This document shows, in pieces, positions 1-37,432 of a DNA stretch of 64,000 bases. The DNA is taken from IMG/VR virus record IMGVR_UViG_3300044972_002389, positions 1-64,000 of that record. One strand, written 5' to 3'. Under the pieces are notes generated by a model, which did not search any database, had not been told where the DNA came from, and saw nothing but the letters and a program-made list of their open reading frames with translations. The position numbers and the translations under genes are program-made. Each line of letters starts with the position of its first letter. Position 1 is the first letter of the stretch.

Positions 1-1144
<1,144 letters not shown>

Positions 1145-1644: not shown

Positions 1645-4600
1645 TTAACCACTAGACTCAATACTCAAAATAAATGGTGTTACAAGGCCAAACAAGCTTT
1701 TGGCAAACACACGTCCACTAAGTGTGCCAGTATTCTGATTGATAACTAATCCTTCGCCAATACGGAAGTCACCTTTGTGATCGGTGCTAGTGTAGTAAAT
1801 TCTCCCACCGCGTCTCATTACAACTTCGTTTTCCTGTATAGGTACACCACCTAACTGAGGCAAGCAGGTGTTGATATCTGTTCCTGCGCCCACATATTCA
1901 AAAGTGTGACTGGATGCAGATGCAACACTTACTTGATAAAAGTTTACAGTTTCATCATCCAAAGGTGCATAGTCTGTAACTTCTTCAAGTGTGACAGTTG
2001 TTTCGTTTTCCACAGTATCGCTGAGCAGTGACCCACCGGCTCCTACTAAATCAGCTGCTACTGCATCCACAATAAATCCAGTGTCACGTGTACACAAGCT
2101 CAGTTGATCAGCTGTTAAGAACCCTGGACCAAAAGTATTCAACACATATTGCGTTACTTCTGCTTGAATAAATTGCTTGTTCAATCGTAACAATTGACTG
2201 GAATTATTCCAGCGTAGATTTTTGGGACCATAGAGGGGGTTTATTGTGCTGATCAATACATCAAAAGAGGCTTCCAAGTTTTGTGAGCTATAACTGCCAT
2301 AATTTAATGCTGGGTTGACTACTTGTGGCACAACCCCCTGGATAGGTATAATTGCACTATTGGTGATAACGTCCATAACCAACGTGCGTAGTTGGGTCAA
2401 AGCAGCGATGGTTTGACTTTCTTGCCCACCAATCAAGCTGGTTACACCGTTCCAGTAATTTCTACCACTACGCAAGGCCTCAATTACTCCACCTTTTGTT
2501 GCATCAAGTGTCATGCCATCTACAATCAATCCCACATCTCGTTCACACAGTGTCAGTTGTGCGGGTGATAAAAATCCAGGATAGGTAATACTTACCCATG
2601 CACCAATTTCAGCTTGGAGGAATGCTCTGTTGGCCTGTAGGAGCAGTCCTGCATGGGTATATCTTATATTGGCTACACTTAAGCCATCGTTAATAAATGT
2701 GGTTATATGGTCGAAAAATGCTGTTACGCCATTCAAAGTAGCTGCTCCACCACTCAAACTTCCATTTGTAACTTGTGCTACAGAAACTTGCAGCGGAACA
2801 ACAGCAGTGTTTTGAACTATGTTTTGACTTAGACTCTTGGCGAAATTTATGGCCTGAATAGTTTGTGTTGATTGACCAGGTATCAAACTGGTTACACCAT
2901 CCCAATAGCGTTGGCCACTTCTGAAACTAAGGCTTGCTGCCAATGGTGCTGGTATTACAGGGCCCCCATTTATTACCAACGGCGTGGCACTACTTATAGT
3001 GTAGTATTTTGGATACAATTTAGCCTCAGCAATAGCAGGAGTACCCCCAGCCCCAATGATATCACCACTGACGCTGTCAATAACTTGGCCAATGAGTTTG
3101 GCAAAATTAGCTTTCTCATCTGTAGTCATAGACACCAAAGTATTTGCATATGCTGTTACTTCAGCTTGTAAGAATGCATAATTGGCTTTCAAAAGAGCAC
3201 TTGCACTATTATATCCTGTAAATGGCAGGCCGTTGGAGATCAAGTTGGTGATAACATTCACTGCTGCTGTTAAGTTAGAGGCAGCATACACTCCATTTGT
3301 AAGCACTGGATTGACACTTGCGGTCACTGCTGTTTGGAAAGGTGCACCTGGGTACGCACCTGGTGGAGTTGATATATTGTTGATAAGATTCAACCCCCAT
3401 GCCAAGATATAATTGATCGCATCAATAGTTTCCGCAGCTTGTCCTGGAAGCTTACTGACTATCCCATTCCAGTAAGATTGTCCTGCTCGTATACTTCTTA
3501 CAAAGCCGCCAGTTGAACAGTCAATTGAGAGAGCATCAACAATGTATCCAACATCTCTGCTGCATAGTGCTTGTAGTCTAGCTGCCTCTGTGGGATTACC
3601 ACCAGCTAATGCGTTGAAGAATCCTGGATACTGCCAATTCACATAAGCCAATACCTCTGCTTGTAAGAAGGCTTTGTTCAGGAGCAGCAAGCTACTGGCA
3701 TTGTCGTAAGGACTCAGGCTTGTCCCGTAATTTATTATTTGACTTGTATTTGTAAAGAACGCAGTCACCCCAGTTGTGGCATCCAATCCGTTGGGCAAAG
3801 CTGGATCAACAACAGGCAGCTCAGTAGCTTGATAAGGACTGCCAACATATCCGGCAGGTGGGGTTGGGTTGTTATCAATCAGATTATATGCCCAGTCTCT
3901 AGCATATGTGATAGCTAGCAATGTATTTGCTGTGTCAATAGGACTGACTGCTGCCTTAGCAGTCAAAAAGCTGAAGCTTTCAGCATCACCACCTTGGAAT
4001 CTTACTCGAGGACCAGCACTGTAACTGTTACCGCCGCTTGCTAGATCAATAGCTGCAAGGCCCATACTGAGATCAAGTAAGCATCCTGTGCCACTTCCAC
4101 TGAGAACATACTGAGTTTCAACGCCATTTAGTGTAGGCATCTTTGAATATTTGCCAGCTGTGTCAATAACAACTCTTGTTACAATACCAGACGTAAATCC
4201 ATTTGATGCGACAGCAACTACTCGGACACGAGTTCTCGCCGTGCCTTCTCCTCCAACCACCTCGAGCAGGTCATTTATTTGATAGCCTTGCCCACCATTG
4301 AAATAGGTGTTGTTTGAGGTTGTAAAGACACTGTTTACGCTAGCACCAACAGCTTGATACCAAATTTGGCCAGCTTTGGCACCAGCGCCCCCGCCTCCTG
4401 AGAAGCGCACAGTGGGGTCAATTACAAAGTTTGATCCTGGATTTGTAATCCGTATATTTGTGACAACACCAGCTGTTACCTCAGTAATAGCTGTTGCACC
4501 AGTGTCGCCATTACCTGATCCTCCACCACCCTCAATAGTGACAATGGGTTGAGCTATATAACCACCGCCCTGACTTATGAGTGTGACTTCACGAATTGTG

Positions 4601-7600
4601 CCAGTTGTGTTGTCATACTCTGCACGACCTTTGGCTGTGATGCCACCGCCACCACTTATAGTAACAGTGGGGCTTGTGTAACCTGTGCCACTGCTGGCGA
4701 GATTTATACTGTTTACGCCAAAATTGATACTGCAACTGAATCCAGTTCCTATGCCGCTGCTAGTGGTAGCCGCACCAGAAACTATAGGGAGGTCTGTGTA
4801 TTCGCCTTCATCAATCACAAAAACTGATGTTACTGCACCTCCCAAACCTACAGCAGCTACTTGAAGCAACACTGGCGTATTCACTTGCAGATTTGGGAAA
4901 GTTCCTCCACTAATTGTTATGGTGTCGTTAAGTGCATAACCGCGACCACCATTCAAAATAGCCACTCCGCTAGCTATATCGCTTCTGCAACTGTAAATCA
5001 CCGCACCAATAATTGCTCCAGTACCACTGGGATCGTAAATTGTTGCGTATGCGCCGCCTGTATAACCAGATCCTTTTTCTATATTATTCAACGCGGTAAT
5101 AGCTCCACTTGTTACTACTGCTTGAAATTCAGCACGCTGTCTTGCGTAACCAATTGGTGGATCCAACAGCACTAGGGGTGTACTAGTATATCCCTGTCCT
5201 TGATCAATTACTTGTATTTCGCTCACATAGCTGAACTCAGGACCAACAGTAGCCACAAGGCCCACAAATGGACGTTGGATAATATTCTTGATGTCAATAG
5301 TATCAACACGGAATCGTCCCGTGCCAGCTTTGATTCTGCCGCCATAGAGATAGGGACTTATGCCATCAGCCAAAATACCAATATCTCCGAAGCTGGTATT
5401 GCTGTTGCTTATGCTGCATGTTGCACCATTTTCTACCCATGTGCCAATTGTAGTACAGATAGTGAAGATTGACACCAACTGTGCGTAACCTTGGTTTGTA
5501 ATGTAGATGCCAGGACCGCCTTGGTTATATTGAGTGAAGCCATCCAAAACCATACTCTTCAAACCTTTGGCAAGGTTTCCATCCACTTTCATCCCACCGC
5601 CAGTTTCGTTAAAACATGTGCAGTTTTGAACATAAGGACTTGTGCTGATTACTCCTGCTCCCCCAGGCACACCAGGAGGAAGATCGGGATCGCCTGCCAA
5701 AGGAGGATAGGTGATAGCAAATCCTGGCGCCTTACCACCTCTGAAACTCACGCCTGCAATGTAACAGGCATTGTTGACCCAAAAGAAGTCTTTTGTAGGA
5801 TTATTGTAAAAGAGATTTACTCTACGCAAGTTATCGCCAATAACTGACACTCGCTCAGGCAAATAGATGGGGTTGTTTTCGTAATAGTTGCCGCTTCGGA
5901 CAAAAATTGTTGTAAATGGTTTTGCGATTGCAGCAGCAGCTTTGACGGTTCTTTTTGCCCGGTCTTCAGCCAAACCATCATTGTTGTCATCACCATCTTT
6001 TGTTACCCAAATTACGTTAGTAACAGCAGGTGCAGTACCTTTGCTAACGCCAGTTACTACCAAATCACCAACACTTACTCTGGCGCCTGTCATTACAGGT
6101 GTTACACGAGCCGTATTACCAGACGGGCTTGGTTGCACAATTGCTTTGGGTGTATTTGTGTATCCACTACCACTGCTGTTGACTATGGCAGCAATCAGAC
6201 CGTAGCTGAGATTTACCCTAGCGCCAGTTCCTGTTCCACCAACTACAGGGTTGTTCAGCAATGTGGGTAGGAAACTATAGTATCCAGGATCAGTAATAAT
6301 AAGAGTGTTGATCTCACTCACCATATTGAATTGAACGCCGTAACCGCTGCCGCCAGTGGCTTTGTTATTGGTCAAAGGTGGCAGGGTGTAGTAAGGTCCT
6401 TGATTTTGGAGTTGGCAAGTGCTCTCAGTAACACTGTATTTGGCTGCTGTTTGATATTCAGTAAGTAGGCCACGGCCACTGCCACCAACAGCGGGGTTAG
6501 CCACAATATTGGGCAGTTCTCTATAAGACCCTGAGTTGTTGATTGTTATGTCTGTTACACGTCCGCCCAAAATAACAGAAATAACTGAGCCATTACTAGG
6601 AGGGTTCACAAAGGTAAGCCTGGTCACACTAGCGGGCTGACTTACTGTGTAGTTTGTACCCAGTGTTTGTTTCACGTTGTCAAGAGTCACATACAAATCA
6701 AAATAGTCAGCTGGTATAATTGCACGGCTGAGATCAAAGTTTGTTTCAACCCCGTCACCTGAGAAACTATTGTAAAATACACCAATTACATCGCCAGCTT
6801 GCAGAGAAAAGGCTGGCAAGAATGTGATATCTGTTTGCAGGCCGTTGGGCGCAAAGCTGTATACAGCCCCTAGGATAATCGTGCCATTTAACGTAACAGT
6901 AACGCCACTATAATCCAATGGATCAATAGTGAATGGAACTGTATAGGTTTTGATTGCTGGATTTGTAACAAAATTGTTTGTATCATATTTCCCCGATATT
7001 TGAATGGGGTCAGCTGAGATAATAGATGTGGCAGGTGTGCCTGAACCACCAAAAACAGTGATTTCCTCACCTGTGATGTATCCCACACCTTGTGCAATTA
7101 TTTGTGGTTCAATCAATTTGACTCTAGTGATAATAATAGTAGCTGATGCTGGTCCATCACCACCACTGACAGTGAGAATATCATTGGGCTTATACCCACG
7201 TCCTTCATTGTTGGCATCAACAAGTATGCTCTTGATTCTAGCTGTTTCCACTTGTAACAAAGTGGGTGCAGAGAATACTCCGCCTTGAACTGTCAAGGCG
7301 TCGCCTGGCGTATATCCAGCGCCACGATCCCAGGGCACAACGATAGGTACAGCGCCCATAACAGCTTCTGCAACAGCTTGCACGCCACCAGGTGGTGGTG
7401 GATCAATTGTAATAGCTGGAACAAGTGTGTATCCGCTTCCAGGATTGTTGATATTCAAGCTAGTAACTTGCCCTTTGGCATTCAAATTCAAAATACCTGT
7501 AGCCAAGCTGTTGGTGATTACATCATTATCAATTAAAACTTGGTCTACAGCCAGCTTACTGGCGTTGAGTTTAGATCCGTCCCATTTGAGATCTGCTGAT

Positions 7601-9138
7601 CCAGCAAATGTTCCCCCATTATTGAATTGAACAGCTTGTGTGGGTCCACCAGGTGTGCCCCCTGGTCCGGCTGGGCCGGTGGGACCTCCTAAGGGGCCGG
7701 TTGGGCCGGTTGCACCAACAGGACCAGCAGGGCCGCCTGACGGTGCAGGAATGGGTTGTGGACCTGTCTCCAAAATGTTGATGATAAGATCAATACGTGC
7801 AACAATGTCATTTGTCCAAAGTCCACCATCAGTGTAGGCGATGTCAAATACTTGGGGCACCAAACTGTAAACAGGTGCAACTGAGGTGTTTGTAACCACA
7901 TCGTTCATCAGGGTTTTTAGATGGTTCAAGGCCGCAACAGTAACCTCTACCTGTCCAGGTATTACTGTTTTCCCAGACTCATAATATTTGTTGCCAGCTA
8001 GGTAGCTATTGAGATTGATGCCACTCAAAACATCGCTCATAACACACGCGGCAATCAGTTGCACATCACGAGCACATTTGTTTTGATCGTAAAAGTAAGG
8101 GGCTGGAAATTGGTTGTTGATCCAGCCAACTACTTCTTGACTCAAGAATTCAAGGTTCAAATATACCAGTGTTTGTGCGCTGAAATTTCCCAACGAGGTG
8201 GGAACAAAGTTGGCATATTCAGTGCTGGGTCCAGTTAGGATAATATTATTGATAATCGCAATATTGCTGGCAATAGGAGCATAGGCTACTACGCCGCCAC
8301 TGAAGCTGGGTATAATTACTTGACTGGGTGGTACAACAGCTGGATAATCTGGTACAATAGCGATATTAGCAACGATTTTTTGAACCAAACTCAATGCATA
8401 AGTTAACGCATCAACAGTCAATTGTTTCTGCGCAGGTGTATTATAAATTAAAACACTTGTAACACCGTTCCAGTAAGCGTTGCCAGCTGCAACACTGTTA
8501 TAAGTAGAGCCCAGCAATGTGTCATTCATTACAGCAAACAGGATAGTAGTCAAGTCTCTGCTGCATTTTTCCAGTTGAGAGGGGGTTAAAGAATAACCCA
8601 GGGGATAATTGCCTTGTACCCAAGAATTAACTTGCGCCCGAATAAATGGCAAATTGTAGATAACCAAGGCAACTGCGTTCAATAAACCTTGATTTTGTGT
8701 AATTTGACCAGGGCTACCATCTGACAAGAGGTACCAAGCTGTGCCGTTGTAATATTCCAACTTGTTATAATCAGTATTGAATCTGATCATACCTGTAGAG
8801 GGAGCAAGTGGGTTACTTGCTGGCCGTTGCGCCGTCAAGCCCACTGGAACCCTGATAGCTCCAGTCCCAGGGAATTGGATGCTGTTTTCTAAATCGCTGT
8901 TTTGGAATCTTGTTACAACCAAGGTGCCGTTGGGATCGCTTGTTAAAACAACCTTGTTGCTTTGAACAGGTCCAGATAACCTCACTGTGGTATTTTGTAG
9001 GTTGGAGATTTCAGCAGCCGCAACAGCAAGTTGAACTCTCATTGCCTCAAAATTGTCTCTGAAACCCTGACTTTCATTGTCAGAACCGGCCACAGGATAG
9101 TTGGTGTTGATACTGTCTGGTCTAATGTTGCTGGTCAT
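1645..9138 (-). CDS. Giant virion structural/fibre protein (~2497 aa) with pectin-lyase-like beta-helix region, GxGYT repeats and CxRD helical repeats
   Basis: Long ORF; likely start MTSNIRPD at 9138; motif VTKDGDDNNDG..AKRTVKAA..IFVRSGNYYE..GDNLR typical of pectin-lyase-fold tail proteins; many (N/D)xGxGYTxxP repeats; short collagen stretch. Confidence 0.8.
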   Translation of the reverse strand: MTSNIRPDSINTNYPVAGSDNESQGFRDNFEAMRVQLAVAAAEISNLQNTTVRLSGPVQSNKVVLTSDPNGTLVVTRFQNSDLENSIQFPGTGAIRVPVGLTAQRPASNPLAPSTGMIRFNTDYNKLEYYNGTAWYLLSDGSPGQITQNQGLLNAVALVIYNLPFIRAQVNSWVQGNYPLGYSLTPSQLEKCSRDLTTILFAVMNDTLLGSTYNSVAAGNAYWNGVTSVLIYNTPAQKQLTVDALTYALSLVQKIVANIAIVPDYPAVVPPSQVIIPSFSGGVVAYAPIASNIAIINNIILTGPSTEYANFVPTSLGNFSAQTLVYLNLEFLSQEVVGWINNQFPAPYFYDQNKCARDVQLIAACVMSDVLSGINLNSYLAGNKYYESGKTVIPGQVEVTVAALNHLKTLMNDVVTNTSVAPVYSLVPQVFDIAYTDGGLWTNDIVARIDLIINILETGPQPIPAPSGGPAGPVGATGPTGPLGGPTGPAGPGGTPGGPTQAVQFNNGGTFAGSADLKWDGSKLNASKLAVDQVLIDNDVITNSLATGILNLNAKGQVTSLNINNPGSGYTLVPAITIDPPPPGGVQAVAEAVMGAVPIVVPWDRGAGYTPGDALTVQGGVFSAPTLLQVETARIKSILVDANNEGRGYKPNDILTVSGGDGPASATIIITRVKLIEPQIIAQGVGYITGEEITVFGGSGTPATSIISADPIQISGKYDTNNFVTNPAIKTYTVPFTIDPLDYSGVTVTLNGTIILGAVYSFAPNGLQTDITFLPAFSLQAGDVIGVFYNSFSGDGVETNFDLSRAIIPADYFDLYVTLDNVKQTLGTNYTVSQPASVTRLTFVNPPSNGSVISVILGGRVTDITINNSGSYRELPNIVANPAVGGSGRGLLTEYQTAAKYSVTESTCQLQNQGPYYTLPPLTNNKATGGSGYGVQFNMVSEINTLIITDPGYYSFLPTLLNNPVVGGTGTGARVNLSYGLIAAIVNSSGSGYTNTPKAIVQPSPSGNTARVTPVMTGARVSVGDLVVTGVSKGTAPAVTNVIWVTKDGDDNNDGLAEDRAKRTVKAAAAIAKPFTTIFVRSGNYYENNPIYLPERVSVIGDNLRRVNLFYNNPTKDFFWVNNACYIAGVSFRGGKAPGFAITYPPLAGDPDLPPGVPGGAGVISTSPYVQNCTCFNETGGGMKVDGNLAKGLKSMVLDGFTQYNQGGPGIYITNQGYAQLVSIFTICTTIGTWVENGATCSISNSNTSFGDIGILADGISPYLYGGRIKAGTGRFRVDTIDIKNIIQRPFVGLVATVGPEFSYVSEIQVIDQGQGYTSTPLVLLDPPIGYARQRAEFQAVVTSGAITALNNIEKGSGYTGGAYATIYDPSGTGAIIGAVIYSCRSDIASGVAILNGGRGYALNDTITISGGTFPNLQVNTPVLLQVAAVGLGGAVTSVFVIDEGEYTDLPIVSGAATTSSGIGTGFSCSINFGVNSINLASSGTGYTSPTVTISGGGGITAKGRAEYDNTTGTIREVTLISQGGGYIAQPIVTIEGGGGSGNGDTGATAITEVTAGVVTNIRITNPGSNFVIDPTVRFSGGGGAGAKAGQIWYQAVGASVNSVFTTSNNTYFNGGQGYQINDLLEVVGGEGTARTRVRVVAVASNGFTSGIVTRVVIDTAGKYSKMPTLNGVETQYVLSGSGTGCLLDLSMGLAAIDLASGGNSYSAGPRVRFQGGDAESFSFLTAKAAVSPIDTANTLLAITYARDWAYNLIDNNPTPPAGYVGSPYQATELPVVDPALPNGLDATTGVTAFFTNTSQIINYGTSLSPYDNASSLLLLNKAFLQAEVLAYVNWQYPGFFNALAGGNPTEAARLQALCSRDVGYIVDALSIDCSTGGFVRSIRAGQSYWNGIVSKLPGQAAETIDAINYILAWGLNLINNISTPPGAYPGAPFQTAVTASVNPVLTNGVYAASNLTAAVNVITNLISNGLPFTGYNSASALLKANYAFLQAEVTAYANTLVSMTTDEKANFAKLIGQVIDSVSGDIIGAGGTPAIAEAKLYPKYYTISSATPLVINGGPVIPAPLAASLSFRSGQRYWDGVTSLIPGQSTQTIQAINFAKSLSQNIVQNTAVVPLQVSVAQVTNGSLSGGAATLNGVTAFFDHITTFINDGLSVANIRYTHAGLLLQANRAFLQAEIGAWVSITYPGFLSPAQLTLCERDVGLIVDGMTLDATKGGVIEALRSGRNYWNGVTSLIGGQESQTIAALTQLRTLVMDVITNSAIIPIQGVVPQVVNPALNYGSYSSQNLEASFDVLISTINPLYGPKNLRWNNSSQLLRLNKQFIQAEVTQYVLNTFGPGFLTADQLSLCTRDTGFIVDAVAADLVGAGGSLLSDTVENETTVTLEEVTDYAPLDDETVNFYQVSVASASSHTFEYVGAGTDINTCLPQLGGVPIQENEVVMRRGGRIYYTSTDHKGDFRIGEGLVINQNTGTLSGRVFAKSLFGLVTPFILSIESSG

Positions 9139-9165
9139 GGATATCCACACTAATCGCGTTTTTTC

Positions 9166-9236
9166 ATATTTATGGGTTGGCACAATTTGTGTTTTTGATC
9201 CATGATTTAACAGTCATCAAGCGTCACGCTTAAATA
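9166..9236. promoter_or_regulatory. Divergent pair of late-type TAAATA motifs
   Basis: CATAAATA on minus (9166-9173) and TTAAATA on plus (9230-9236) between divergent genes. Confidence 0.55.
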
Positions 9237-14367: not shown

Positions 14368-15535
14368 CCTCAGTTGAGTCCAGTGTAGCCTCATTATCGT
14401 TCAGGACTACTGCCACATCATTGTCTGTATTTTGAAGGTTGGGCACTAAGACAACAGTTTCTGTTGATTTTTCCACATTGCTGTCAAACCAATCTTGGAT
14501 AATCTTAAGGTTGTTTTTTAGTCTGCCATCATTTGAATTGTGTTCAACCGCCTTGGAAGCGTAATCTAAGCTTTCTGTTCTTAACCCCAAATTCCAAGCA
14601 CTTATGCTGGCAAGATCATGTGGTAACCAACTCCATGAGTCTTCGTTACAAGTGTAGTCCATTGGATGTTGAGTGATCTCTAGGGCTTTTACAGCATGTT
14701 TGTAGCATTCACCCCAATTGGCTTTTGTATAATAATATCGAGCTAGCTCAACCAATGGCTCTCTATGATTTGGAGTTTCCATAGTAGCCATCTTCAACCA
14801 GAACTCTTTGTTTTCATCATCCACTGATGCCAAGTTTTGCATTGCAAATCCTCGCTCTACATTCCAGCAAGGCATTGTCAAGAACTCTTTGTAAGTTTTG
14901 ATGCAATCTTCCTTCATACCTCGATACATATATTCTCTGCCCAGATAAGCTCGCATGCGTGCATCGTGAGGATATTCTCTCACTGCTTCCTGAAGCAATG
15001 GTAGATCGCCGTTTTTGTTTTTGAATTCAGGGTAGTGGAGGATACGCAGCTCGGGGCAACTGGTTTGAACTTCAGGCACACGGCTGCATAACCCTTCGTG
15101 AGTCGCACCTACCCATCGAAAACCTCGTCGCGCATGGATGCGATCTCCATTCCAGATGCGGCCAGGCACACCAGGTGACAACCAATTCCAAATATATGTA
15201 TATCTAAGTCTAGTGGTTTCTGGTGTCCATGACTTTTCCAACAGTTCTCGCCAGCCGTTATCAAGACGTTCATCCATATGAAGACAAATGCATACATCAC
15301 AATCAGCTGGTAACAAACTCATTGCGATATTATATGCATCATCAAAACGCCAAGGACTGATCAATGTATCATATACAGAAACTTTATTCTCTTGTAAAAT
15401 TTGTTTTGTATCATCTGTGCTGCCTGTATCTATTACTACTCGGTAATCAGCATCTGCACATGACAGGGCCCAAGCAGCAGCATTTTTGTTCTCGTTCAAT
15501 GCCGGAGCATAGACGCCTATTTTCAATTTTGTCAT
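14357..15535 (-). CDS. Glycosyltransferase family 2 with TPR repeats
   Basis: [26 protein letters not shown], then TPR-like helices. Confidence 0.85.
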
Positions 15536-16596
15536 CCTTTGTTCTCCAGGACAGATTTCACAAACTCATAATTGGATTTGATGCGGCCATCTTCTGGCTC
15601 AAGACGTGCAGCTTCTTCAAACATTCTGAGGCTTTCGTCCTTTAGGCCGAGGTTCCAAGCACCTAATCCGCATAGATCATACATTCTTCCTCCCCAAGCG
15701 TGCGAATAATCAAGATAGCTGTTGCTCTTGTGAGCACATTTCAAACCTTCTTTAGCAGCCGCATAGAGATTGGGCCAATCAGCATTGTTGTAGTAATATT
15801 CGGCTAGATTTAACCAAACTTCTCGTCGTGTGGGACTTTCAACAGAACTTAGTCTCAGCCACTTCAATTCTTCATGGGGTAGACATTTGGCTAACCACTT
15901 CATAGCCTCGCTCCGTTCATCAGCCCAACCACTTTCAGGCATGGCAAGATACTTTTGGAAATGTTCAGCAGCATTTTCAGGCTGATTATACCAAGCATAC
16001 TCTCTTGCCAACCAATAGCACAATTGACTGTCACGTGGCATCTCTTTGTAGCTTGTTTCCAGCAAGGGTAGATATTGGCCACGACTTTTGCTAGGATCTT
16101 GTTTGTGCCACATAACAACACTGGGGGCTACGACGGTTTTTTCATCACCAATGGGAAAAATAGTTTCATGCACTGCACGCTTCCATCGATAACCAAATCT
16201 ACTATGCAGCTTGTCTGCAAGGAATTGACTAAGTGGTTGGTCATTGGCATCAAAGTTGTGAACATAATGATAGCGCAGTCTTGTTGTGCCAGGTAACCAA
16301 TGTTTTTCCAGCTCTTCTCGCCAACCGGGGGCCATCATCTCATCCATGTCCATAGAGATACAGACATCAACATCTTCTGGAACCAATGCTAGTGCCATGT
16401 TGCGTGCATCATCAAACCTCCAAGGTTTGATTTTAATAACACTTACTTGTACACCACGTTCTCGCAATGCCTCCACAGTGCCATCTGTGCTGCCAGTGTC
16501 AGCTACGACTAGATAGTCAGCTTCTTTGACACTGTCACACCAACGCTCTACAAAATGTCTTTCGTTAAGGGAGATAGTATATACAGCTAGTTTCAT
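15532..16596 (-). CDS. Glycosyltransferase family 2 with TPR repeats (paralogue)
   Basis: YTISLNE, DTGSTDGT, PWRFDDARN, DMDE (DxD), VHE, then TPR-like helices. Confidence 0.88.
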   Translation of the reverse strand: MKLAVYTISLNERHFVERWCDSVKEADYLVVADTGSTDGTVEALRERGVQVSVIKIKPWRFDDARNMALALVPEDVDVCISMDMDEMMAPGWREELEKHWLPGTTRLRYHYVHNFDANDQPLSQFLADKLHSRFGYRWKRAVHETIFPIGDEKTVVAPSVVMWHKQDPSKSRGQYLPLLETSYKEMPRDSQLCYWLAREYAWYNQPENAAEHFQKYLAMPESGWADERSEAMKWLAKCLPHEELKWLRLSSVESPTRREVWLNLAEYYYNNADWPNLYAAAKEGLKCAHKSNSYLDYSHAWGGRMYDLCGLGAWNLGLKDESLRMFEEAARLEPEDGRIKSNYEFVKSVLENKG

Positions 16597-17336
16597 GTAA
16601 TCACCTTTGGCAAAGAATCAGGATCAGAAATATATGGAGTATACCACCATCCTGTATATCTACGTTGTACCACATTTAACGGCAAATCTGCAAAACAGAC
16701 TTCAATATTATGGTGTTTTAAATGGGTATCAAACGCTTTGTGAGGATGAAAGTCTTTGTCTGAGAAGCAGGAAAATCTTTTGCCTGCTTGATTTGCTGTG
16801 CTGCTGTTGCCTATAAACCAAAAATCGCAAGGACTGCCACACCCAAATTTACGTTGAACCAGAAGTTGGTTGTAATCAAAACACCACTGAGGCAAGGAGT
16901 TTTGATAGATGACATCAGCTCGGCTTACAATGACAAAATCGTATTTTTGAGAAAAACAGCTTGCCATCTCAACAACTCTTTCTTGTGCCCATAAATTGGC
17001 CCACATTGCTAGAGGATAATCTTCAACAGAGCCAATATTTGATTTCAACTGTGCAAGTGAGTTTGAAAAACACTGGGAATCCAAGCTAAATGTCTCAGAT
17101 TGTAAAGGACATAAGCTTGATAACATTGAAAAATCCTGGTGTGTTGGAAAACCACCAGGATTTTTATGTGTGTATCGTGGATGGTTTGAATCTGCAGGAT
17201 ACATTCCCAAGGACGATGCATCGTAAACACAGGCAAACAGGTCTATGTTCAAACAGCTAAACAAATGAGTTCGCAAGCTAGCTGCAACATTGTTGAAATG
17301 TCGATAAGGGCCATACAGGCACAGTGCTAGTTTCAT
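16593..17336 (-). CDS. Putative glycosyltransferase-like/glycan-modifying protein
   Basis: MKLALCLYGPYR..YDFVIVSRADV..DFWFIG pattern, shared with 18510..19178. Confidence 0.55.
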   Translation of the reverse strand: MKLALCLYGPYRHFNNVAASLRTHLFSCLNIDLFACVYDASSLGMYPADSNHPRYTHKNPGGFPTHQDFSMLSSLCPLQSETFSLDSQCFSNSLAQLKSNIGSVEDYPLAMWANLWAQERVVEMASCFSQKYDFVIVSRADVIYQNSLPQWCFDYNQLLVQRKFGCGSPCDFWFIGNSSTANQAGKRFSCFSDKDFHPHKAFDTHLKHHNIEVCFADLPLNVVQRRYTGWWYTPYISDPDSLPKVIT

Positions 17337-18043
17337 TATACTACCTTGATCCAAGGAGTGTATTTTTGAATATCATGTTGCTCATAAGTGAACTGACTGT
17401 TTCGAGTAGTGTGATAGTAGATTTTTTTATGAGTTAGCAGTTCGCCAACGCTGTGAATGAAGTTGAAAACACTGCTATCAATGAGGTGTATCTCTTGTGC
17501 ATTTTCAATTACACGTATCCAGGAAAGAAGATTTGATGTAACATTATGTGAGACTTTTACAATACGTACATCGTGAGCACTTTCATCTACCCATTTCAAA
17601 GGCACCCTTCCACCAATGCTGGGCTCGTCATGGACTAATCTATACGGGGTAGAGTCTCCCACAACCATATCATACACTGCGTCAACATCAGGAATACATT
17701 GTGGTAATTTGAATTGGGAGAATCGGTATTCATAAGGTAAGCCAAATTGCTCATAGTACCACCTGTACCACCGTGCACTTGTGGGTCGATGCATATACAC
17801 ATCAGCTTCGATTATAGGTATGCCAAAACAATCTAAGCTGTTTTCAACAGTCTCACTAATACCGTCTATTTTTAGTAGTTTTACTTTGGGATTGTCTTGA
17901 TATAAACAGGAAACTGTGGGCCAGTTGTGAGGTTTCACAGGCACAAATACCTGATCGTATATTTCTGAGAAATAGTTGACTAAGCCATTACAAATGAAAT
18001 AATCACCCAATCCCAGTTGGTGTGCTACTATTACTTCTTTCAT
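17336..18043 (-). CDS. Putative glycosyltransferase (GT-B-like)
   Basis: HQLGLGDYFICNGLV N-terminus, IENAQEIHLIDSS; glyco-cluster context. Confidence 0.55.
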   Translation of the reverse strand: MKEVIVAHQLGLGDYFICNGLVNYFSEIYDQVFVPVKPHNWPTVSCLYQDNPKVKLLKIDGISETVENSLDCFGIPIIEADVYMHRPTSARWYRWYYEQFGLPYEYRFSQFKLPQCIPDVDAVYDMVVGDSTPYRLVHDEPSIGGRVPLKWVDESAHDVRIVKVSHNVTSNLLSWIRVIENAQEIHLIDSSVFNFIHSVGELLTHKKIYYHTTRNSQFTYEQHDIQKYTPWIKVV

Positions 18044-18513
18044 TGTGCACCTACAGGATGCAACAGGCTTATCCAGTCAGAGCATATTCCAAACGCATCC
18101 CAGCTCAAGCATTCAGCTAATTTATCAAGTGGGGTGTGCCATTCAGGCATTACTGCTATACTATTTGAGAACAATGGTTTGTTTGGTGATGTCCACCAGT
18201 AATTTTGGCTTGTTAATACACGCTCATCATTTTCATGCCAAAAATAGTTCAACATTGGGTGCAAGTGGTGTAACTGGCTCAACTCTTGGCAAGCTTTTGC
18301 ATTCTTAGCGTGAATCCATAAGTTTTGCTGTGTTAGGAAATCAGTTGTTACTCTAATTGATGGAGCATCATGCCCCAACATCCAGCCGTCTGTGTACCAA
18401 ACATCAATTTCCACGTCAATTCCCAACTCCAAACAAGTGTGGATTGATTGGGGAGTGTTTTCAGCTTTGGGATCAGGACCATACAAAAGTCCTCGATGTG
18501 CAATCAATCTCAT
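18040..18513 (-). CDS. Glycerophosphodiester phosphodiesterase-like protein
   Basis: IAHRG, ENT, VEIDVW, LGHD, GICSD motifs. Confidence 0.8.
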   Translation of the reverse strand: MRLIAHRGLLYGPDPKAENTPQSIHTCLELGIDVEIDVWYTDGWMLGHDAPSIRVTTDFLTQQNLWIHAKNAKACQELSQLHHLHPMLNYFWHENDERVLTSQNYWWTSPNKPLFSNSIAVMPEWHTPLDKLAECLSWDAFGICSDWISLLHPVGAQ

Positions 18514-19178
18514 GGTATAATTCCTGTTGGTCTTACTATTCCGTTATGCCAGTTGTGTTCTTTGACTGGTATGTTGTGTAACAAAAGATGGCTTTTCAAA
18601 AACAACTCGCCACAAAAATCCACCTTGTAGTCTTGATAGAGTGTAGGAAGCCAATCCACTAGTTGTGCGTAAGTTTTCATAGTTGTACTGCTGCCATATG
18701 CAAATTGGTCACTTATGCCCAGATACTCTTGGTCCAAGAACTGGAATCGATGCCCAGATAATCCCGGTGTATGGGCTACATTTACTGCGTTGTTCAATTC
18801 CAGCTCCACAGTTTGAAGGAACCAATCAAATCTTGCACGGATAATCACGTCATACTCAAACCCAAAATTAGTTTGATAGTCAAGCGCCAAGCCAATGGCT
18901 TTTTGAATTCCAGTATATTGTGCAAGTTGATTTTGTGGTATAGTACGGTATGCCCAAATGCGGTCTGTGTACAGGCTTACATCATATTTTTTAGGTTGTT
19001 CCCAGGACAGGATTTTGGGTTGATATAAGCTCCAAAAATTATTGGGGTCAAAATCTAGATTTTGCCAAGTGTGAATGAATACGTCAGGTTGATATACGTC
19101 TAATAGACATCGTTTCCAGTAACGATGCGTTTCCCTTACAAATCTTGGTAAACCTGAAAAACAAAGTGCCACACGCAC
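18510..19178 (-). CDS. Putative glycosyltransferase-like protein
   Basis: RVALCFSGLPR..VFIHTW..YDVIIRARFD..SDQFAYG. Confidence 0.6.
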   Translation of the reverse strand: MRVALCFSGLPRFVRETHRYWKRCLLDVYQPDVFIHTWQNLDFDPNNFWSLYQPKILSWEQPKKYDVSLYTDRIWAYRTIPQNQLAQYTGIQKAIGLALDYQTNFGFEYDVIIRARFDWFLQTVELELNNAVNVAHTPGLSGHRFQFLDQEYLGISDQFAYGSSTTMKTYAQLVDWLPTLYQDYKVDFCGELFLKSHLLLHNIPVKEHNWHNGIVRPTGIIP

Positions 19179-19508
19179 CTAGTCACCCAAGGTCAAGAGT
19201 TGTTTGTCATTCATACTGGGAACCTTGACACAAATAATACTTGTGTCCTCAAGAAACTCAGGATTGGTGATTTCCCAAGGATACAGAATAAAAATATCTC
19301 CAGAGCTGAGCTCAGTGTCTTGAATTCTCATTCTCCCGCTGGTAATGAGATTGATCTCAGTAACTTTTGTGTGAAAGTGCGGATCAGGAGGATCACTGGA
19401 TTTGTGTGTGCGAAAACCAACTTCAAAGTCTTTTGTGGGCCAAGCAGTGGGCTCAAAATCGCCCACAAACCATCCTCGTAGCATATTGTTGTGTTTCAAC
19501 AACTTCAT
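19179..19508 (-). CDS. Cupin-fold protein
   Basis: GWFVGDFEP, HFHTKVTEIN, GDIFILYPWE. Confidence 0.75.
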   Translation of the reverse strand: MKLLKHNNMLRGWFVGDFEPTAWPTKDFEVGFRTHKSSDPPDPHFHTKVTEINLITSGRMRIQDTELSSGDIFILYPWEITNPEFLEDTSIICVKVPSMNDKQLLTLGD

Positions 19509-20605
19509 AGACCAAATGACTCCCAGTTCACAATTCCAAACCCTTGATCAGTTAATACATTTACAGCCAGTGCTCTATTACTGTCAGCTTCACTAAGCTT
19601 GTCATTTACAATTACTCTTGTACCACTTGTAACACCCATCAACAGTTGATCATACGCTATACCAATACTCTCAAGCTGTGCAACTGTGGCAGCTCTAGTA
19701 CTTTCTTTTCTGGCTGTAACAAGTATAATAGTGTGCCCTTGGCTATCCCATTGGTTGAACTTTTCTCGTACACCGTGTAGTATTTTTGGCTCAACTCGCA
19801 ATGCCTCACTTATGGAATGCTGATGTTGAATAAGGGTGCCGTCAATGTCGCAAAAAATTGTTTTGGGCTTGCTGCTGTAAAACTCCTTCACCTTACCCAA
19901 ATACCGTGCCACATCTTCTGGAGTGCCCAACGGAATATAAATGTTTGGAGCAACAAAATATGGGAAAATGCTTGAGCCTTGTTGAATGAGATAGTTGTAA
20001 GTTTCGCTTATGTAACACTCAGGCCGGCCGTGAAATGTAAATTCTGACAGGAGTTTTTCTGCACTTTCTACAAAATCACAGCCGCGTTTCCAATAGTGAA
20101 AACCAATTAGTGCATCATCTGAGATGGGATTTTTCTCCACAACCTGTACTACTCGACTGTTTTTGATCTCAGCAAAGCTGTTCTTGGGATCCCTTTCTTT
20201 GTGAAGCACAACTGCCCCATCAACTCCGGTATCGCTTGTAAATTTTAAAAACTCTCGAGGATCCCAATTGATGATTTGATCGCAATTATAAATCACTAGC
20301 GGCTCATTGTTGTTGATAAACTCTCGAGCACACAATGCTGTTTGGCTGGCACCATTTGTGACACGATCTATTTCAATTATCTCACATTCAGGGCGTAGTT
20401 GCTTCAATAGACTGTTCAGCTGGTGTGAATATGCTGGGTTCTCATATTTGCGTGTTACAAAAATAAATTTTCCATCAACATCAAAGCTTTTGATGCTATG
20501 CTCAATCAGTGTGCGAGAGTTAACCTCAATAAGCGGTTTAGGCTCTTGTATCCCAATGTTGGAAAATCTAGAGCCCAACCCTGCCATTGGTATGAGAATA
20601 TTCAT
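19505..20605 (-). CDS. Sugar nucleotidyltransferase fused to HAD-like phosphatase
   Basis: IPMAGLGSRF..PKPLI N-terminal domain; C-terminal FCDIDGTL, VTAR, VNDK. Confidence 0.85.
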   Translation of the reverse strand: MNILIPMAGLGSRFSNIGIQEPKPLIEVNSRTLIEHSIKSFDVDGKFIFVTRKYENPAYSHQLNSLLKQLRPECEIIEIDRVTNGASQTALCAREFINNNEPLVIYNCDQIINWDPREFLKFTSDTGVDGAVVLHKERDPKNSFAEIKNSRVVQVVEKNPISDDALIGFHYWKRGCDFVESAEKLLSEFTFHGRPECYISETYNYLIQQGSSIFPYFVAPNIYIPLGTPEDVARYLGKVKEFYSSKPKTIFCDIDGTLIQHQHSISEALRVEPKILHGVREKFNQWDSQGHTIILVTARKESTRAATVAQLESIGIAYDQLLMGVTSGTRVIVNDKLSEADSNRALAVNVLTDQGFGIVNWESFGL

Positions 20606-21418: not shown

Positions 21419-22276
21419 ATGAAAGATTATTATAGTATCCTTGCCGTGCAAGAAAATGCAACTCAAGATGAGTTGAAAAAGGCTTATCGCACACTTGCAA
21501 TGCAGTATCATCCAGACCGTAACAAAAGCAGTGAATCTGAGAGTAAATTCAAAGAGATCAATGAGGCTTATGATACTCTAGGTAACGAAGACAAGCGTCA
21601 AGCTTACGATCAGCAACGCAAGTTTGGTGGAAGTCAGCCAGGTGGATTCCATTTTGAATTCCGTGGAGGAGGATCACCCTTTGGTGATATTTTTGAACAA
21701 ATCTTCCGAGGTCAAGGATTTGACCACTTTAGCCAACGACCAAGTCGTAATCCTGACACGCAAGTTCAGTTGAATATAACCTTGGAAGAAGCGTTCACAG
21801 GAAAAAGTGTACCAATTCAATTTACTGATAGTGCTGGCCAAAACATCAATTTAGTTGTGAACATACCTGCAGGTATTGATAGTGGGTATAGGTTACGATA
21901 TGCTGGCAACGGTAGCCGAACACATGCCAATTTAGCACCTGGAGATTTGTATATTACTGTGTTTGTTACGCCGCACTCTGTGTTCGAGAGGAGTGGGCCT
22001 CATTTGTTGACTACACTGAAGGCCAACATTTGGGAAACATTAGTGGGGGTTGACAAGCTTGTTAGTGTGATTGAAGGCGGTGCAGTTTCCATGAAAGTCC
22101 CGCCTTTGTCCAAAGATCAAACTCTACTTAACGTCAAAGGCAAGGGCATGCCGCTCAGTAGTAATAGTTCTTCACGTGGTGACCTCATGGTCAGACTCCA
22201 TGTAGAGCTGCCACAAAAGCTGGATCAAGATCAGCTTGATGCCATTTCAAAATGGGCACACCCCCAAACATCTTAA
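21419..22276 (+). CDS. dnaJ: DnaJ/CbpA-type co-chaperone (class B, no Zn finger)
   Basis: DYYSIL, YHPDRN (HPD), G/F-rich linker, C-terminal GDLYI/GDLMV. Confidence 0.92.
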   Translation: MKDYYSILAVQENATQDELKKAYRTLAMQYHPDRNKSSESESKFKEINEAYDTLGNEDKRQAYDQQRKFGGSQPGGFHFEFRGGGSPFGDIFEQIFRGQGFDHFSQRPSRNPDTQVQLNITLEEAFTGKSVPIQFTDSAGQNINLVVNIPAGIDSGYRLRYAGNGSRTHANLAPGDLYITVFVTPHSVFERSGPHLLTTLKANIWETLVGVDKLVSVIEGGAVSMKVPPLSKDQTLLNVKGKGMPLSSNSSSRGDLMVRLHVELPQKLDQDQLDAISKWAHPQTS

Positions 22277-22298
22277 ATCTTTCACCAGGACAGCACAT

Positions 22299-30713: not shown

Positions 30714-30893
30714 ATTACAAGATGATATTTGTCAAGACAATCACTACTGTCGCAGTCAATTACTATTGCAATCATTCACTATTGCAAAATAGTGCTTATA
30801 GTATCTCACTTGATAACAACAACAAAAACTCTATCTCGGAGGTCTCATCAATACTACTATGCCAAGATTCTCAGGAACTTAAGGAGACATAAT

Positions 30894-31397
30894 ATGCTGT
30901 ATTCCTATAAAAACCAATGGCCTCAGTCGTTGCCATTCAGGATAAGACTATTAGATGGTAGAACACGAACTGATCCTAGCACTTTCACTCCAGAAGAAAT
31001 TGATGATGCTGGATATGTGCCTGTAAGTGATCCTCCTCAACTACAGGACAATGAGAAATTGTTGTGGAATGATATCACAGGTGCGTGGATAGTGACCGAA
31101 TATACCCTGGAAGAACTTGAAATGCTGAAGCAGACAAAATGGAAAGATGTGCGACAACAGAGAGATATACTTATTCAGTCGGTTGCATGGAGAGTTGAAC
31201 GCTGTAATCGATACTTAAGATTGGGTCTCACTCCAATTGATGATATCCTCACTCTCGAACGCTATATTCAAGAACTAGCTGATATACCTCAAACACAACA
31301 AGATCCTTTCAATATTATTTGGCCTAGTTTACACATTGTTCCTGTGGAATCAGTGAATCCTTATCCTCCGGGATTCCTTCCGGAGATGAACGTGTAG
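30894..31397 (+). CDS. Tail fibre assembly chaperone-like protein
   Basis: ATG after AAGGAG; C-terminal WKDVRQQRDILI..YIQELADIPQTQQDPFNIIWP. Confidence 0.75.
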   Translation: MLYSYKNQWPQSLPFRIRLLDGRTRTDPSTFTPEEIDDAGYVPVSDPPQLQDNEKLLWNDITGAWIVTEYTLEELEMLKQTKWKDVRQQRDILIQSVAWRVERCNRYLRLGLTPIDDILTLERYIQELADIPQTQQDPFNIIWPSLHIVPVESVNPYPPGFLPEMNV

Positions 31398-35378: not shown

Positions 35379-35395
35379 GATAAAAGGAATAAAAT

Positions 35396-36046
35396 ATGTA
35401 TGTGTTAGTACATAACGAAAGAGTGTTGGTAGGTCCAATGAGTTGGAATAGGCCAATGTTTGAAGGCGGTCTGGACCGCCTTAAGATTTCAGCATTGCTG
35501 CCGCGCAATGACCCTGAAACCGTTCCTATTGTGATAGACGATGCCACCTATTTGACCACAGCACAGCTGGTGATACCCGATCATAACTCTCGAACACAAA
35601 CCTATTATGGTCCGTTCTGGGATTTCACTAATCCTGCAATTGCCGTTGGTACATTTGAGATCAAATACAAGCAAATTTGGGAGATACAAGCTCAGTTGCG
35701 AGACGAGGCACAAGCCAATCGCTACACTGCTGAAGTGGGTGGCACACACACTGTGATACAAGGTAAAAAAGTTACTATTGACACTAGCAGAGAAGGTAGG
35801 AACATTTTTGTGCAAAAATACTCTCTTATGGCAACTGATGAAACAGTGAATTGGAAGTTTCCGGAAACTTGGCTCACTCTCACAAAAGATGAATTAGGCC
35901 AATGCGTCGCTGCTGGTGCAGCGCATATTCAAGCCACATTTGACTGGGAAAAACTCAAAGATGATGAAATCACTGCCTCAACCACTATAGAGGAGTTGGA
36001 AGTGTTAGTGGTAGGCAACGTGCCCAATCTAGTGAGTGGTGGTTAA
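35396..36046 (+). CDS. DUF4376-like tail-associated protein
   Basis: RYTAEVGG..IDTSREGR..VNWKF..HIQATFDWE pattern; AAGGA RBS. Confidence 0.6.
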   Translation: MYVLVHNERVLVGPMSWNRPMFEGGLDRLKISALLPRNDPETVPIVIDDATYLTTAQLVIPDHNSRTQTYYGPFWDFTNPAIAVGTFEIKYKQIWEIQAQLRDEAQANRYTAEVGGTHTVIQGKKVTIDTSREGRNIFVQKYSLMATDETVNWKFPETWLTLTKDELGQCVAAGAAHIQATFDWEKLKDDEITASTTIEELEVLVVGNVPNLVSGG

Positions 36047-36057
36047 GGAAGCGCAAG

Positions 36058-37431: not shown

Positions 37432-37432
37432 C

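Follow-up and report, generated by a model that had tools for sequence, protein, structure and literature searches.

Does a giant putative fibre protein of a cyanophage contain domains derived from the light-harvesting pigment proteins of cyanobacteria, and could such domains still hold a pigment? The question arose from an inspection of 64,000 nucleotides of the IMG/VR virus record IMGVR_UViG_3300044972_002389 (the whole stretch analysed, hereafter the window), in which a sequence-only reading noticed phycobiliprotein-like C-x-R-D motifs repeated in one very large open reading frame (ORF). We first verified the repeats, then traced the family to which they belong and its relationship to phycobiliproteins (PBPs), and finally evaluated whether the conserved motif may represent a ligand site.

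A repeated C-x-R-D domain in a giant putative fibre protein

The observation made from the sequence alone proved correct. Five C-x-R-D motifs occur in the ORF, with the Cys codons at exactly the positions given in that reading and with the peptides it listed, and the sixth copy, described as lacking the Cys, is also real, its motif position reading N-F-A-K-L (aa 2026-2030, window 3088-3108). The motifs sit inside six helical repeats of ~155 aa that are far beyond chance: self-BLAST gave E-values of 1e-12 to 1e-33, and pairwise BLASTP between copies gave 26-43% identity over about 50-230 aligned positions with E-values of 1e-9 to 1e-33. Placement of the copies with an HMM additionally revealed a half copy that had been missed (Table 1). 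Two copies follow the N-terminal domain and four and a half precede the conserved C-terminal domain, and together they make up about 40% of the protein. An identical gene is found on a 241-kb metagenome contig, whereas a 99%-identical strain lacks both r1 and r2. Megablast of the gene, and of a related locus, against phage genomes gave no match.

Table 1. Features of the giant ORF, with positions in the window (all on the minus strand).
Position (strand)	Residues (aa)	Feature	Cys or equivalent codon	Basis
1645..9183 (-)	1-2512	Giant ORF with GTG start; 2497 aa from Met16 (9136-9138), the start chosen by gene callers; putative virion fibre or structural protein		PHROG tail-fibre and virion-structural families, E down to 2e-102
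8701..9183 (-)	1-161	N-terminal domain, beta-rich in the model; matches N-terminal parts of phage structural proteins		PHROG hits at aa 73-170; strands at the start of the r1+r2 model
8206..8700 (-)	162-326	PBP-like module r1, Cys207 in CSRD	8563-8565	Motif, BLASTP, HMM, structure model
7750..8214 (-)	324-478	PBP-like module r2, Cys370 in CARD	8074-8076	Motif, BLASTP, HMM, structure model
7681..7734 (-)	484-501	Short collagen-like Gly-X-Y run		Sequence pattern
6094..7596 (-)	~530-1030	Region of ~40-aa G-x-G-Y repeats		Motif spacing of 38-40 aa; PHROG virion-structural families
5284..6093 (-)	~1031-1300	Segment shared with cyanomyovirus tail-fibre-like proteins such as P-SSM2 PSSM2_293; probably, by inference only, a beta-helix		tblastn; PHROG 5342 and 9851
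3949..5286 (-)	~1300-1745	Second region of G-x-G-Y repeats		Motif spacing; PHROG
3760..3948 (-)	1746-1808	Half copy of the module, C-terminal half only (profile positions 89-144)		HMM, E 1e-4; E 3e-7 with the larger profile
3214..3744 (-)	1814-1990	PBP-like module r3, Cys1874 in CSRD; long B-E loop containing AGGN	3562-3564	Motif, BLASTP, HMM, loop lengths
2680..3240 (-)	1982-2168	PBP-like module r4, no Cys; Phe2027 in its place, Arg and Asp also lost; 36-aa insert after GAGG	3103-3105	HMM, residue counts
2242..2703 (-)	2161-2314	PBP-like module r5, Cys2213 in CERD; modelled with AlphaFold	2545-2547	Family alignment, structure model
2032..2253 (-)	2311-2384	Truncated module r6, N-terminal half only, running straight into the C-terminal domain; Cys2364 in CTRD	2092-2094	HMM
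1648..2031 (-)	2385-2512	C-terminal domain conserved in cyanophage tail-fibre-like proteins		PHROG 17885, 3442 and 529 at aa 2393-2510; tblastn up to aa 2508/2509 in 222 cyanophage records

The repeat belongs to a large unnamed family of 1246 protein clusters with up to 36 copies per protein, and the consensus proposed in the sequence-only reading matches the family consensus derived from about 1600 copies. Among 50,697 phage genomes, the family occurs only in cyanophages, in fibre, baseplate gp7 (including gp7 of P-HM2) and "virion structural" proteins, the last annotation following virion proteomics of the related phages S-SM1, Syn9 and S-PM2. One relative lies next to the portal, prohead protease and gp23 genes. 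For the protein in the window, homology to fibre and structural families (PHROG 17885, 5342, 4527 and 701, E 2e-102 to 3e-46), the segments shared with cyanophage tail-fibre-like proteins and the collagen-like run likewise indicate a fibre-like architecture. A look-alike search in the ESM Atlas returned only unnamed viral clusters with scores at or below 0.76. To look for a cellular source other than PBPs, the pattern KCxRDVGYI was searched in 185,579 species genomes, which gave only four loci, all in metagenome bins; the one examined carries a 3186-aa phage-fibre-like ORF and is probably a mis-binned phage contig.

Remote homology to phycobiliproteins

Individually, the copies in the window are too diverged to reveal a relationship to PBPs. 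None of the six hits the Pfam family PF00502 even at E <= 10, a profile of the six copies found nothing in the PDB sequences, and against a profile of real PBPs the best window copy has an E-value of 0.14. The link appears only at the family level, where five independent lines of evidence agree in the same register. A profile of 129 copies searched against PDB sequences gave 37 hits, 36 of which are PBPs, the best being phycocyanin alpha (E 1.4e-4) with the module Cys aligned to Cys84. A profile-profile comparison (hhalign) with 26 real PBPs gave a probability of 93.9% and an E-value of 1.6e-7 over 89 columns, again with the Cys on Cys84. Of the 129 copies, 35 hit PF00502 at E <= 1 (best 2.9e-5, below the Pfam threshold), while no other family is hit by more than two copies, and a relative carries a precomputed faint PF00502 hit. 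Reciprocally, a PBP profile hits 470 of 1614 copies at E <= 0.01 and none of the shuffled or reversed controls. By family profile score, the modules are closest to the alpha-type rod subunits (CpcA 23.3 bits, CpeA 16.5, Apc 13.2, CpeB 11.9, CpcB 8.8).

Structure prediction gave the fifth line of evidence. A template-free AlphaFold2 model of r5 (pLDDT 90.4, pTM 0.84) retrieved exclusively PBPs among the top 50 Foldseek hits in the PDB, with target-normalised TM values of 0.48-0.69 and modest E-values (3e-3 at best). For a second model, covering r1 and r2 (pLDDT 85.1, pTM 0.62), 48 of the top 50 hits are PBPs or smURFP (6fzn and 7uqa), and the other two are ApcE (9v7j_A) and a tandem haemoglobin; over both models TM values reach 0.72. 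The predicted fold is thus globin-like, all-helical and of the PBP type, although in both models the helix F region is a short beta hairpin.

The modules also deviate from PBPs in several respects. The loop between helices B and E, which in PBPs covers the bilin and spans about 20 residues from Phe63-Pro64 to Cys84, is about 10 residues shorter in most copies: the modal distance between the aromatic residue just before the conserved Pro (Y/F-P) and the Cys is 10 residues (723 of 1391 copies), and HMMER alignments require an insertion of 8-10 residues in the PBPs. The AGGN-containing long loop of r3, which had been likened to the PGGN loop of beta subunits, is an idiosyncratic insert rather than a relic, as long loops are rare, heterogeneous and share no motif. 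The position equivalent to Arg93, which in PBPs contributes with Asp13 to the alpha-beta interface, is Asp in 78% of copies. An alternation of alpha-like and beta-like copies along the arrays, as might be expected from alpha-beta discs, is rejected, because identity between copies is 0.373 at lag 1 and 0.374 at lag 2.

A putative bilin site and its alternatives

The C-x-R-D motif is present in five of the six full or N-terminal copies in the window and in 93-98% of about 1550 family copies. Across about 1565 copies that share only about 37% identity, Cys is conserved in 95%, Arg in 96% and Asp in 98%, and the three residues decay together. Asp is never lost while Cys is present (0 of 1482) but is lost in 38% of Cys-less copies, Arg is lost in 2% against 51%, and the structural Asp66 in 0.4% against 6%. 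In Cys-less copies, the Cys position is Phe, Trp or Tyr in 35 of 68 cases, against a background of 9.8% (p 4e-18), and it is Phe in 22 of 39 copies in which Arg or Asp is also lost, as in r4. The replacement of Cys by Phe is what a collapsed, filled-in pocket would look like and points to a ligand pocket. As copies are not phylogenetically independent, p-values for the co-loss are inflated.

The interpretation offered with the original observation, that the protein may carry globin/PBP-fold modules able to bind a tetrapyrrole, is partly supported. What the analysis shows, with high confidence, is that the repeats are diverged tandem copies of a ~155-aa domain that is a remote homologue of PBPs and was recruited into proteins of cyanomyoviruses identified as tail-fibre-like, baseplate gp7 or virion structural, where it was multiplied into arrays of 1 to 36 copies. 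Everything beyond this is inferred from sequence and models alone, including the structural role of the modules, the ligand site and bilin binding itself. The modules may form rigid helical beads of the shaft that can be gained or lost as cassettes, given the strain without r1 and r2. In our preferred reading, the Cys-x-Arg-Asp site is a working ligand site inherited from the bilin-binding ancestor. During assembly in the host cytoplasm, a free bilin (phycocyanobilin or phycoerythrobilin) would dock in the site, with the Asp holding the pyrrole N-H groups and the Arg a propionate. The Cys would form the thioether, either spontaneously, as in BBAGs, ApcE and smURFP, or with a host or phage lyase, and the pigment would then simply stabilise the module or make the fibre or baseplate light-responsive. 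A precedent exists in that the CXRD motif marks bilin attachment in PBPs and in the lyase-independent BBAG-1 and BBAG-3 (PMC10151467). We estimate the probability of covalent or tight bilin binding in native virions at about 0.45, whereas some ligand at this site appears somewhat more likely than not. Besides the shortened loop, the altered F region, the Asp at the Arg93 position and the lack of significance of the individual window copies against PBP profiles, several observations caution against this reading. Consistent with the sequence-only reading, no heme oxygenase, bilin reductase or lyase was found in the 64-kb window, either among 51 ORFs scanned with Pfam, which did not include all small ORFs, or by tblastn with the P-SSM2 heme oxygenase and PebS. 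P-SSM2 itself carries ho1 and pebS but shows no module at E <= 10 in six-frame ORFs covering 246 of its 252 kb, which weakens the idea that phage bilin genes exist simply to serve these modules. Furthermore, no coloured or fluorescent cyanophage particles are known to have been reported.

The strongest alternative, which remains possible, is that the fold was captured from a host gene and is now a pigment-free building block of fibres and baseplates, with Cys, Arg, Asp and Tyr82 retained because they form an internal polar or packing network, or an inter-module or inter-chain contact, needed for a stable extracellular rod. The modified loop and F region, the behaviour of the arrays as length modules, the dispensability of r1 and r2 in the sister strain, the persistence of Cys-less copies such as r4 inside arrays, the absence of bilin genes among the window sequences searched and the presence of such genes in P-SSM2 without detected modules would all fit this view. 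In contrast, the fold tolerates loss of all three residues (r4 and 35 other copies), so they are not needed for folding, yet they are kept in 93% of copies. When Arg or Asp is lost, Cys is replaced by bulky Phe rather than by small residues, which implies free space beside it. In addition, a single conserved free Cys per module is unusual for an extracellular protein, and every characterised CXRD globin binds a bilin (PMC10151467).

It is less likely that the site binds something other than a bilin, such as a metal ion shared between chains on the fibre axis or a different small molecule, or that the Cys forms another covalent link, such as an inter-chain disulfide or thioester. The conserved set Cys52, Asp55, Asp66, Asn72 and Tyr82 is polar and fibre proteins often bind ions on their axis, but Arg is not a metal ligand, one Cys per module cannot pair among three chains, Gln93 is Glu in 34% of copies, which argues against a Cys-Gln thioester, and homology places the Cys exactly on the bilin attachment site. 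Very unlikely is a convergent or artefactual likeness of helical, Ala/Leu-rich repeats with a chance motif match, because, despite the insignificant single-copy searches, the modest Foldseek E-values and a sequence identity of only 12-25%, the five lines of evidence agree, the controls gave no hits, matching columns extend well beyond the motif (A40/L44/N47, F63-P64, K83-C84-x-R86-D87-I/V88-G89-Y90, Y97, L99 and G102-G103), and the family occurs only in phages of PBP-containing hosts. Equally unlikely is a non-virion protein acting inside the infected cell as a PBP mimic, for example by titrating host lyases, linkers or NblA, since, although the domain resembles a host protein and phages interfere with phycobilisomes through NblA (PMC12695635), the architecture is that of a fibre and relatives are gp7, annotated structural proteins and a gene in the head-tail block.

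PBPs and their relatives are known as antenna or small bilin-binding proteins of cells, and these findings appear to represent an unrecognised case of a phage turning a host photosynthesis protein into a structural part, with the attachment triad retained. They also make two questions directly testable, namely why adsorption of some cyanomyoviruses needs light independently of host photosynthesis, for which "light-sensitive tail fibres" have been named as one possibility (PMC6628666), and why cyanophages, including those of Prochlorococcus hosts that lack phycobilisomes, carry cpeT and bilin synthesis genes, the role of which has been called "a mystery" and "unresolved" (PMC3037559). A far-reaching but unlikely possibility is that cyanomyovirus particles carry covalently bound bilins on the modules of their fibres and baseplate as the virion's own light sensor. 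This would explain the light-dependent adsorption of S-PM2, P-HM1 and P-HM2, all of which have the modules, while none was detected in P-SSM2, which adsorbs in the dark, and it would give a purpose to at least part of the phage-encoded bilin genes (cpeT, ho1, pebS, pcyA). If pigmented, these would be the first chromophore-bearing virions and a viral photoreceptor. If unpigmented, this large domain family still deserves a Pfam entry and would be an example of a cofactor-binding fold reused as scaffold.

Comparison with known systems

As in the modular repeat shafts of phage fibres and the giant gp7 of cyanomyoviruses, the repeats appear to be used as length modules, vary in copy number between relatives and are located in gp7 and fibre genes. 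However, as far as is known, described shaft repeats are beta-structured or coiled coils, and a globin-like, cofactor-type domain used as a shaft unit has, to our knowledge, not been described; the literature searched likewise contained no account of PBP-like virion modules.

With the PBP alpha subunits (CpcA, CpeA; PF00502), the modules share the predicted globin-like helical fold of about 155-165 aa, conserved columns on helices A/B, the Y/F-P turn, K-C-x-R-D-[IV]-G-Y on helix E, Tyr97, Leu99 and Gly102-Gly103, and the alignment of the Cys with the Cys84 attachment site. They differ in being embedded as tandem domains in giant phage structural proteins instead of being made as free subunits, in the shorter B-E loop, in the Asp at the Arg93 position, in the lack of alpha/beta alternation and in scoring below the Pfam threshold.

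The bilin biosynthesis-associated globins BBAG-1 and BBAG-3 of heterotrophic bacteria and some cyanobacteria (Rockwell et al. 2023, PMC10151467) are non-antenna relatives of PBPs that keep the CXRD motif and attach bilins without a lyase, which is the behaviour proposed here. BBAGs are small stand-alone proteins encoded next to heme oxygenase and pre-PcyA genes, and no heme oxygenase or FDBR gene was found in the 64-kb window. The core-membrane linker ApcE provides an example of a PBP domain built into a large multidomain polypeptide, and smURFP, an engineered allophycocyanin alpha, binds biliverdin covalently without a lyase. ApcE has a single PBP domain and sits in the phycobilisome core, smURFP is man-made, and neither is a virion component or a tandem array.

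The repeat-bearing protein and its surroundings

All of the repeats lie within a single giant ORF, whose start is ambiguous: the longest frame begins at a GTG, whereas gene callers on an identical 241,173-bp metagenome contig start the protein at Met16. Its five C-x-R-D motifs match to the codon the positions given by the sequence-only reading, and the peptides quoted there are present in the translation. BLASTP between segments of the protein showed that the surrounding ~155-aa stretches are true repeats, with 26-43% identity and E-values of 1e-9 to 1e-33, and a profile search resolved six copies (r1 to r6) plus a half copy that the sequence-only reading had missed. The observation of repeated C-x-R-D-bearing domains within a giant protein is therefore confirmed. 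In a strain whose giant protein is 99% identical over the shared aa 486-2512, exactly the modules r1 and r2 (aa ~158-485) are lacking, and the modules therefore appear to come and go as a cassette between close relatives.

Pfam detected nothing in the whole protein, but PHROGs gave strong hits to tail-fibre and virion-structural families (E 2e-102 to 3e-46). A tblastn search against 50,697 phage genomes found relatives almost only in T4-like cyanophages, which match mainly through a segment at aa ~1031-1300 and the C-terminal domain. Between the modules lie a short collagen-like run and two regions of ~40-aa G-x-G-Y repeats.

The window as a whole looks like part of a large phage genome, for which a cyanobacterial host is inferred from the relatives only. 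In addition to phage-typical genes (PhoH, a tail-assembly chaperone, DNA ligase, and UvdE), it encodes putative fibre-related proteins, namely collagen-like proteins and six RCC1-like paralogues, as well as chaperones and many sugar-modification genes. The run of RCC1-like paralogues looks like a cassette of alternative fibre tips or receptor binders.

Positions of the repeat modules in the giant protein and of other features in the window and in related loci
Feature	Position	Strand	Details
Giant ORF	window 1645..9183	-	2512 aa from GTG 9183; 2497 aa from ATG 9138 (Met16) as called on identical contigs
Ambiguous start of the giant gene	window 9136-9183	-	
C-x-R-D motifs	aa 207, 370, 1874, 2213, and 2364		
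r1	aa 162-326		
r2	aa 324-478		
Half copy	aa 1746-1808		
r3	aa 1814-1990		contains an AGGN loop
r4	aa 1982-2168		Cys-less, N-F-A-K-L at window 3088-3108; 36-aa insert
r5	aa 2161-2314		
r6	aa 2311-2384		truncated, followed directly by the C-terminal domain
Strain lacking r1 and r2 (locus L005)	L005:3384-9899, compared with window 7750-8700	-	
Collagen-triple-helix-repeat proteins	window 18-980 and 26226-28238	+ and +	E 4e-23 and 6e-54; the second lies in a GC-rich stretch (0.48-0.52) with strong GC skew at 26-30 kb
Chaperone pair	window 21419-24605	+	DnaJ followed by a ClpB-like double AAA+ protein of 789 aa
RCC1-like paralogues	window 32713-41497, with 30729-31397 and 35396-36046	+ (32713-41497)	six consecutive ~450-aa paralogues with RCC1-like beta-propeller domains, preceded by a tail-assembly-chaperone-like ORF and interrupted by a DUF4376 ORF
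Sugar or surface-modification genes	window 42364-47453, 53673-55844, and 15532-20605		carbamoyltransferase, methyltransferases, sulfotransferase, family-2 glycosyltransferases, epimerase, DegT aminotransferase, and an NTP-transferase/HAD fusion
Unusual cargo	window 49376-52904 and 56154-63451		Mrp/NUBPL-type P-loop NTPase, RyR-domain protein, VWA protein, HD-domain protein, ATP-dependent DNA ligase, DUF1190 protein plus a glutathionylspermidine-synthase-like protein, and the UV endonuclease UvdE
Heme oxygenase and tail-fibre gene PSSM2_293 of P-SSM2 (locus L013)	L013:17709-20727 (P-SSM2 213709-216727)		heme oxygenase two genes upstream of PSSM2_293

A cyanophage-specific domain family remotely homologous to phycobiliproteins

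The repeat belongs to a large family that has no name. A profile of the six copies, run against 1.84 billion representative proteins, found 1246 proteins at E<=1e-3 and 506 at E<=1e-30, with individual proteins having up to 36 matched stretches and reaching 6382 aa. From the best 150 proteins we extracted 1608 copies with a median unit of 154 aa, in which neighbouring copies share about 37% identity and show no two-type alternation. Among cultured phages, a module from P-HM2 found 353 records and 1171 places, and apart from one 'Marine' record, every one is a Synechococcus, Prochlorococcus, or other cyanophage record. These hits fall in genes annotated as tail fibre, short tail fibre, gp7 baseplate wedge, or virion structural protein, and P-HM2 gp7 (4454 aa) holds two modules, with CARD and CIRD motifs. 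One metagenomic relative lies directly after the portal, prohead-protease, and gp23 genes, and structure hits in BFVD are cyanophage structural proteins plus a few uncultured-phage proteins. In contrast, a scan of 185,579 species genomes for the pattern KCxRDVGYI found only four loci (L016-L019), all in metagenome bins, labelled Gammaproteobacteria and Rhodobacteraceae Water_Bin34. The three Rhodobacteraceae contigs have 5.7x to 88x coverage, and the one locus examined (L017) carries a giant ORF of 3186 aa that hits phage fibre families. These are thus probably mis-binned phage contigs, although a non-cyanobacterial host is not excluded.

Single copies from the window gave no hit to phycobiliproteins (PBPs), but the family did. 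A profile of 129 copies against all PDB sequences returned 37 hits at E<=10, of which 36 are PBPs; the best is phycocyanin alpha (E 1.4e-4), with an alignment that runs from helix A/B to the start of helix F and puts the module Cys on Cys84. Using real CpcA, CpcB, allophycocyanin, CpeA, and CpeB genes from cyanobacterial plasmids, plus 21 CpcA homologues, hhalign of the two alignments gave a probability of 93.9% and E 1.6e-7 over 89 columns. When each of the 129 copies was scanned against Pfam, 35 touched PF00502 at E<=1 (best 2.9e-5), and no other family was touched by more than two copies. In the reciprocal direction, the PBP profile hit 470 of 1614 copies at E<=0.01 and 59 at E<=1e-4, but no shuffled or reversed control at E<=0.01. 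AlphaFold2 without templates, fed only phage copies, gave a confident seven-helix model of r5 (pLDDT 90.4, pTM 0.84), whose 50 best Foldseek matches in PDB are all PBPs. An independent model of r1+r2 (pLDDT 85.1, pTM 0.62) again hit PBPs and smURFP, the two remaining hits being ApcE and a tandem haemoglobin. Alpha-type subunits scored highest against the family profile (CpcA 23.3 bits, CpeA 16.5, Apc 13.2, CpeB 11.9, and CpcB 8.8). We regard the homology as established with high confidence.

Conservation of the putative attachment site

Across about 1550 copies, the Cys, Arg, and Asp of the motif are kept in 95%, 96%, and 98%, respectively, and 1443 copies keep all of Cys52, Arg54, Asp55, Asp66, and Tyr82. 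The losses are coupled: Asp55 is lost in 0 of 1482 copies when Cys is present but in 38% of those without it, Arg54 in 2% vs. 51%, Tyr82 in 0.4% vs. 31%, and Asp66 in 0.4% vs. 6%. So the fold survives without the triad, as r4 shows, yet the triad is almost always kept, and it is kept as a unit. In Cys-less copies, the Cys position is aromatic in 35 of 68, against a background of 9.8% (p 4e-18), and it is Phe in 22 of the 39 that also lost Arg or Asp, whereas it is mostly Ser when Arg and Asp are kept. As the copies are related to one another, these p-values overstate independence, although the direction of the effect is clear. Replacing a Cys with Phe requires free space next to it, which is what a ligand pocket that has been filled in would look like.

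A link to cyanophage biology can be inferred only. Adsorption of S-PM2, P-HM1, and P-HM2 requires light and, as shown for S-PM2, does not depend on host photosynthesis, whereas P-SSM2 adsorbs in the dark (PMC6628666). S-PM2, P-HM1, and P-HM2 carry the modules, while P-SSM2 shows none at E<=10 over 246 of its 252 kb; this is a match in four phages only and is not evidence by itself. The role of phage pebS and pcyA has been called 'a mystery' and that of cpeT (in 12 of 16 genomes) 'unresolved', and in Table 3 of that study all six Prochlorococcus myoviruses carry pebS or pcyA, against one of ten Synechococcus myoviruses (PMC3037559). The modules offer a possible phage-encoded substrate. However, P-SSM2 has ho1 and pebS without modules, so this cannot be the whole explanation. 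In P-SSM2, heme oxygenase lies two genes upstream of tail-fibre gene PSSM2_293, the homologue of the aa 1031-1300 segment and the C-terminal domain of the giant protein, and P-SSM2 nevertheless shows no module. No bilin genes were found in the present window, which leaves out the other 177 kb of the genome.

Interpretation and comparison with known bilin-binding proteins

We consider it demonstrated by the present analysis that the repeats and motifs are real, that they form a large cyanophage-specific domain family, that this family is remotely homologous to PBPs and retains the attachment triad, and that the proteins carrying it are, by sequence and annotation, of fibre or baseplate type. 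That the modules act as shaft units gained and lost as cassettes, that the triad is a functional ligand site, and that a bilin is bound there are inferences. The proposal of the sequence-only reading, namely PBP-fold modules able to bind a tetrapyrrole, is thus partly supported, in its homology but only by inference in its ligand. Bilin binding in native virions remains a tentative reading, with a probability of about 0.45. A pigment-free scaffold is somewhat less likely but remains a serious possibility, and another ligand or link at this site appears unlikely. A chance or convergent likeness to PBPs, or a protein that is not a virion part, is very unlikely.

Literature searches found no description of such modules in virions. 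PBPs themselves are known, as is their attachment signature: the CXRD motif marks bilin attachment in PBPs and also in BBAG-1 and BBAG-3, which attach bilins without lyases (PMC10151467), and smURFP and ApcE are further lyase-free precedents among the structural hits. What is new is a PBP-related domain with this motif in phage fibre- or baseplate-type proteins, and it would be categorically new if the virions turn out to be pigmented. Compared to PBPs, the loop between helices B and E is about 10 residues shorter, as the modal distance from the aromatic residue before the conserved Pro to the Cys is 10 residues, against about 21 in PBPs. The AGGN loop of r3, which the sequence-only reading had singled out, is not a family trait. 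The position of Arg93 is Asp in 78% of copies, position 98 is an almost invariant Asp, and the helix F region is modelled as a short hairpin. Moreover, the domains are fused head to tail in giant proteins rather than made as alpha and beta subunits. The modules therefore fail several defining features of the antenna family and are best called a new PBP-related domain family.
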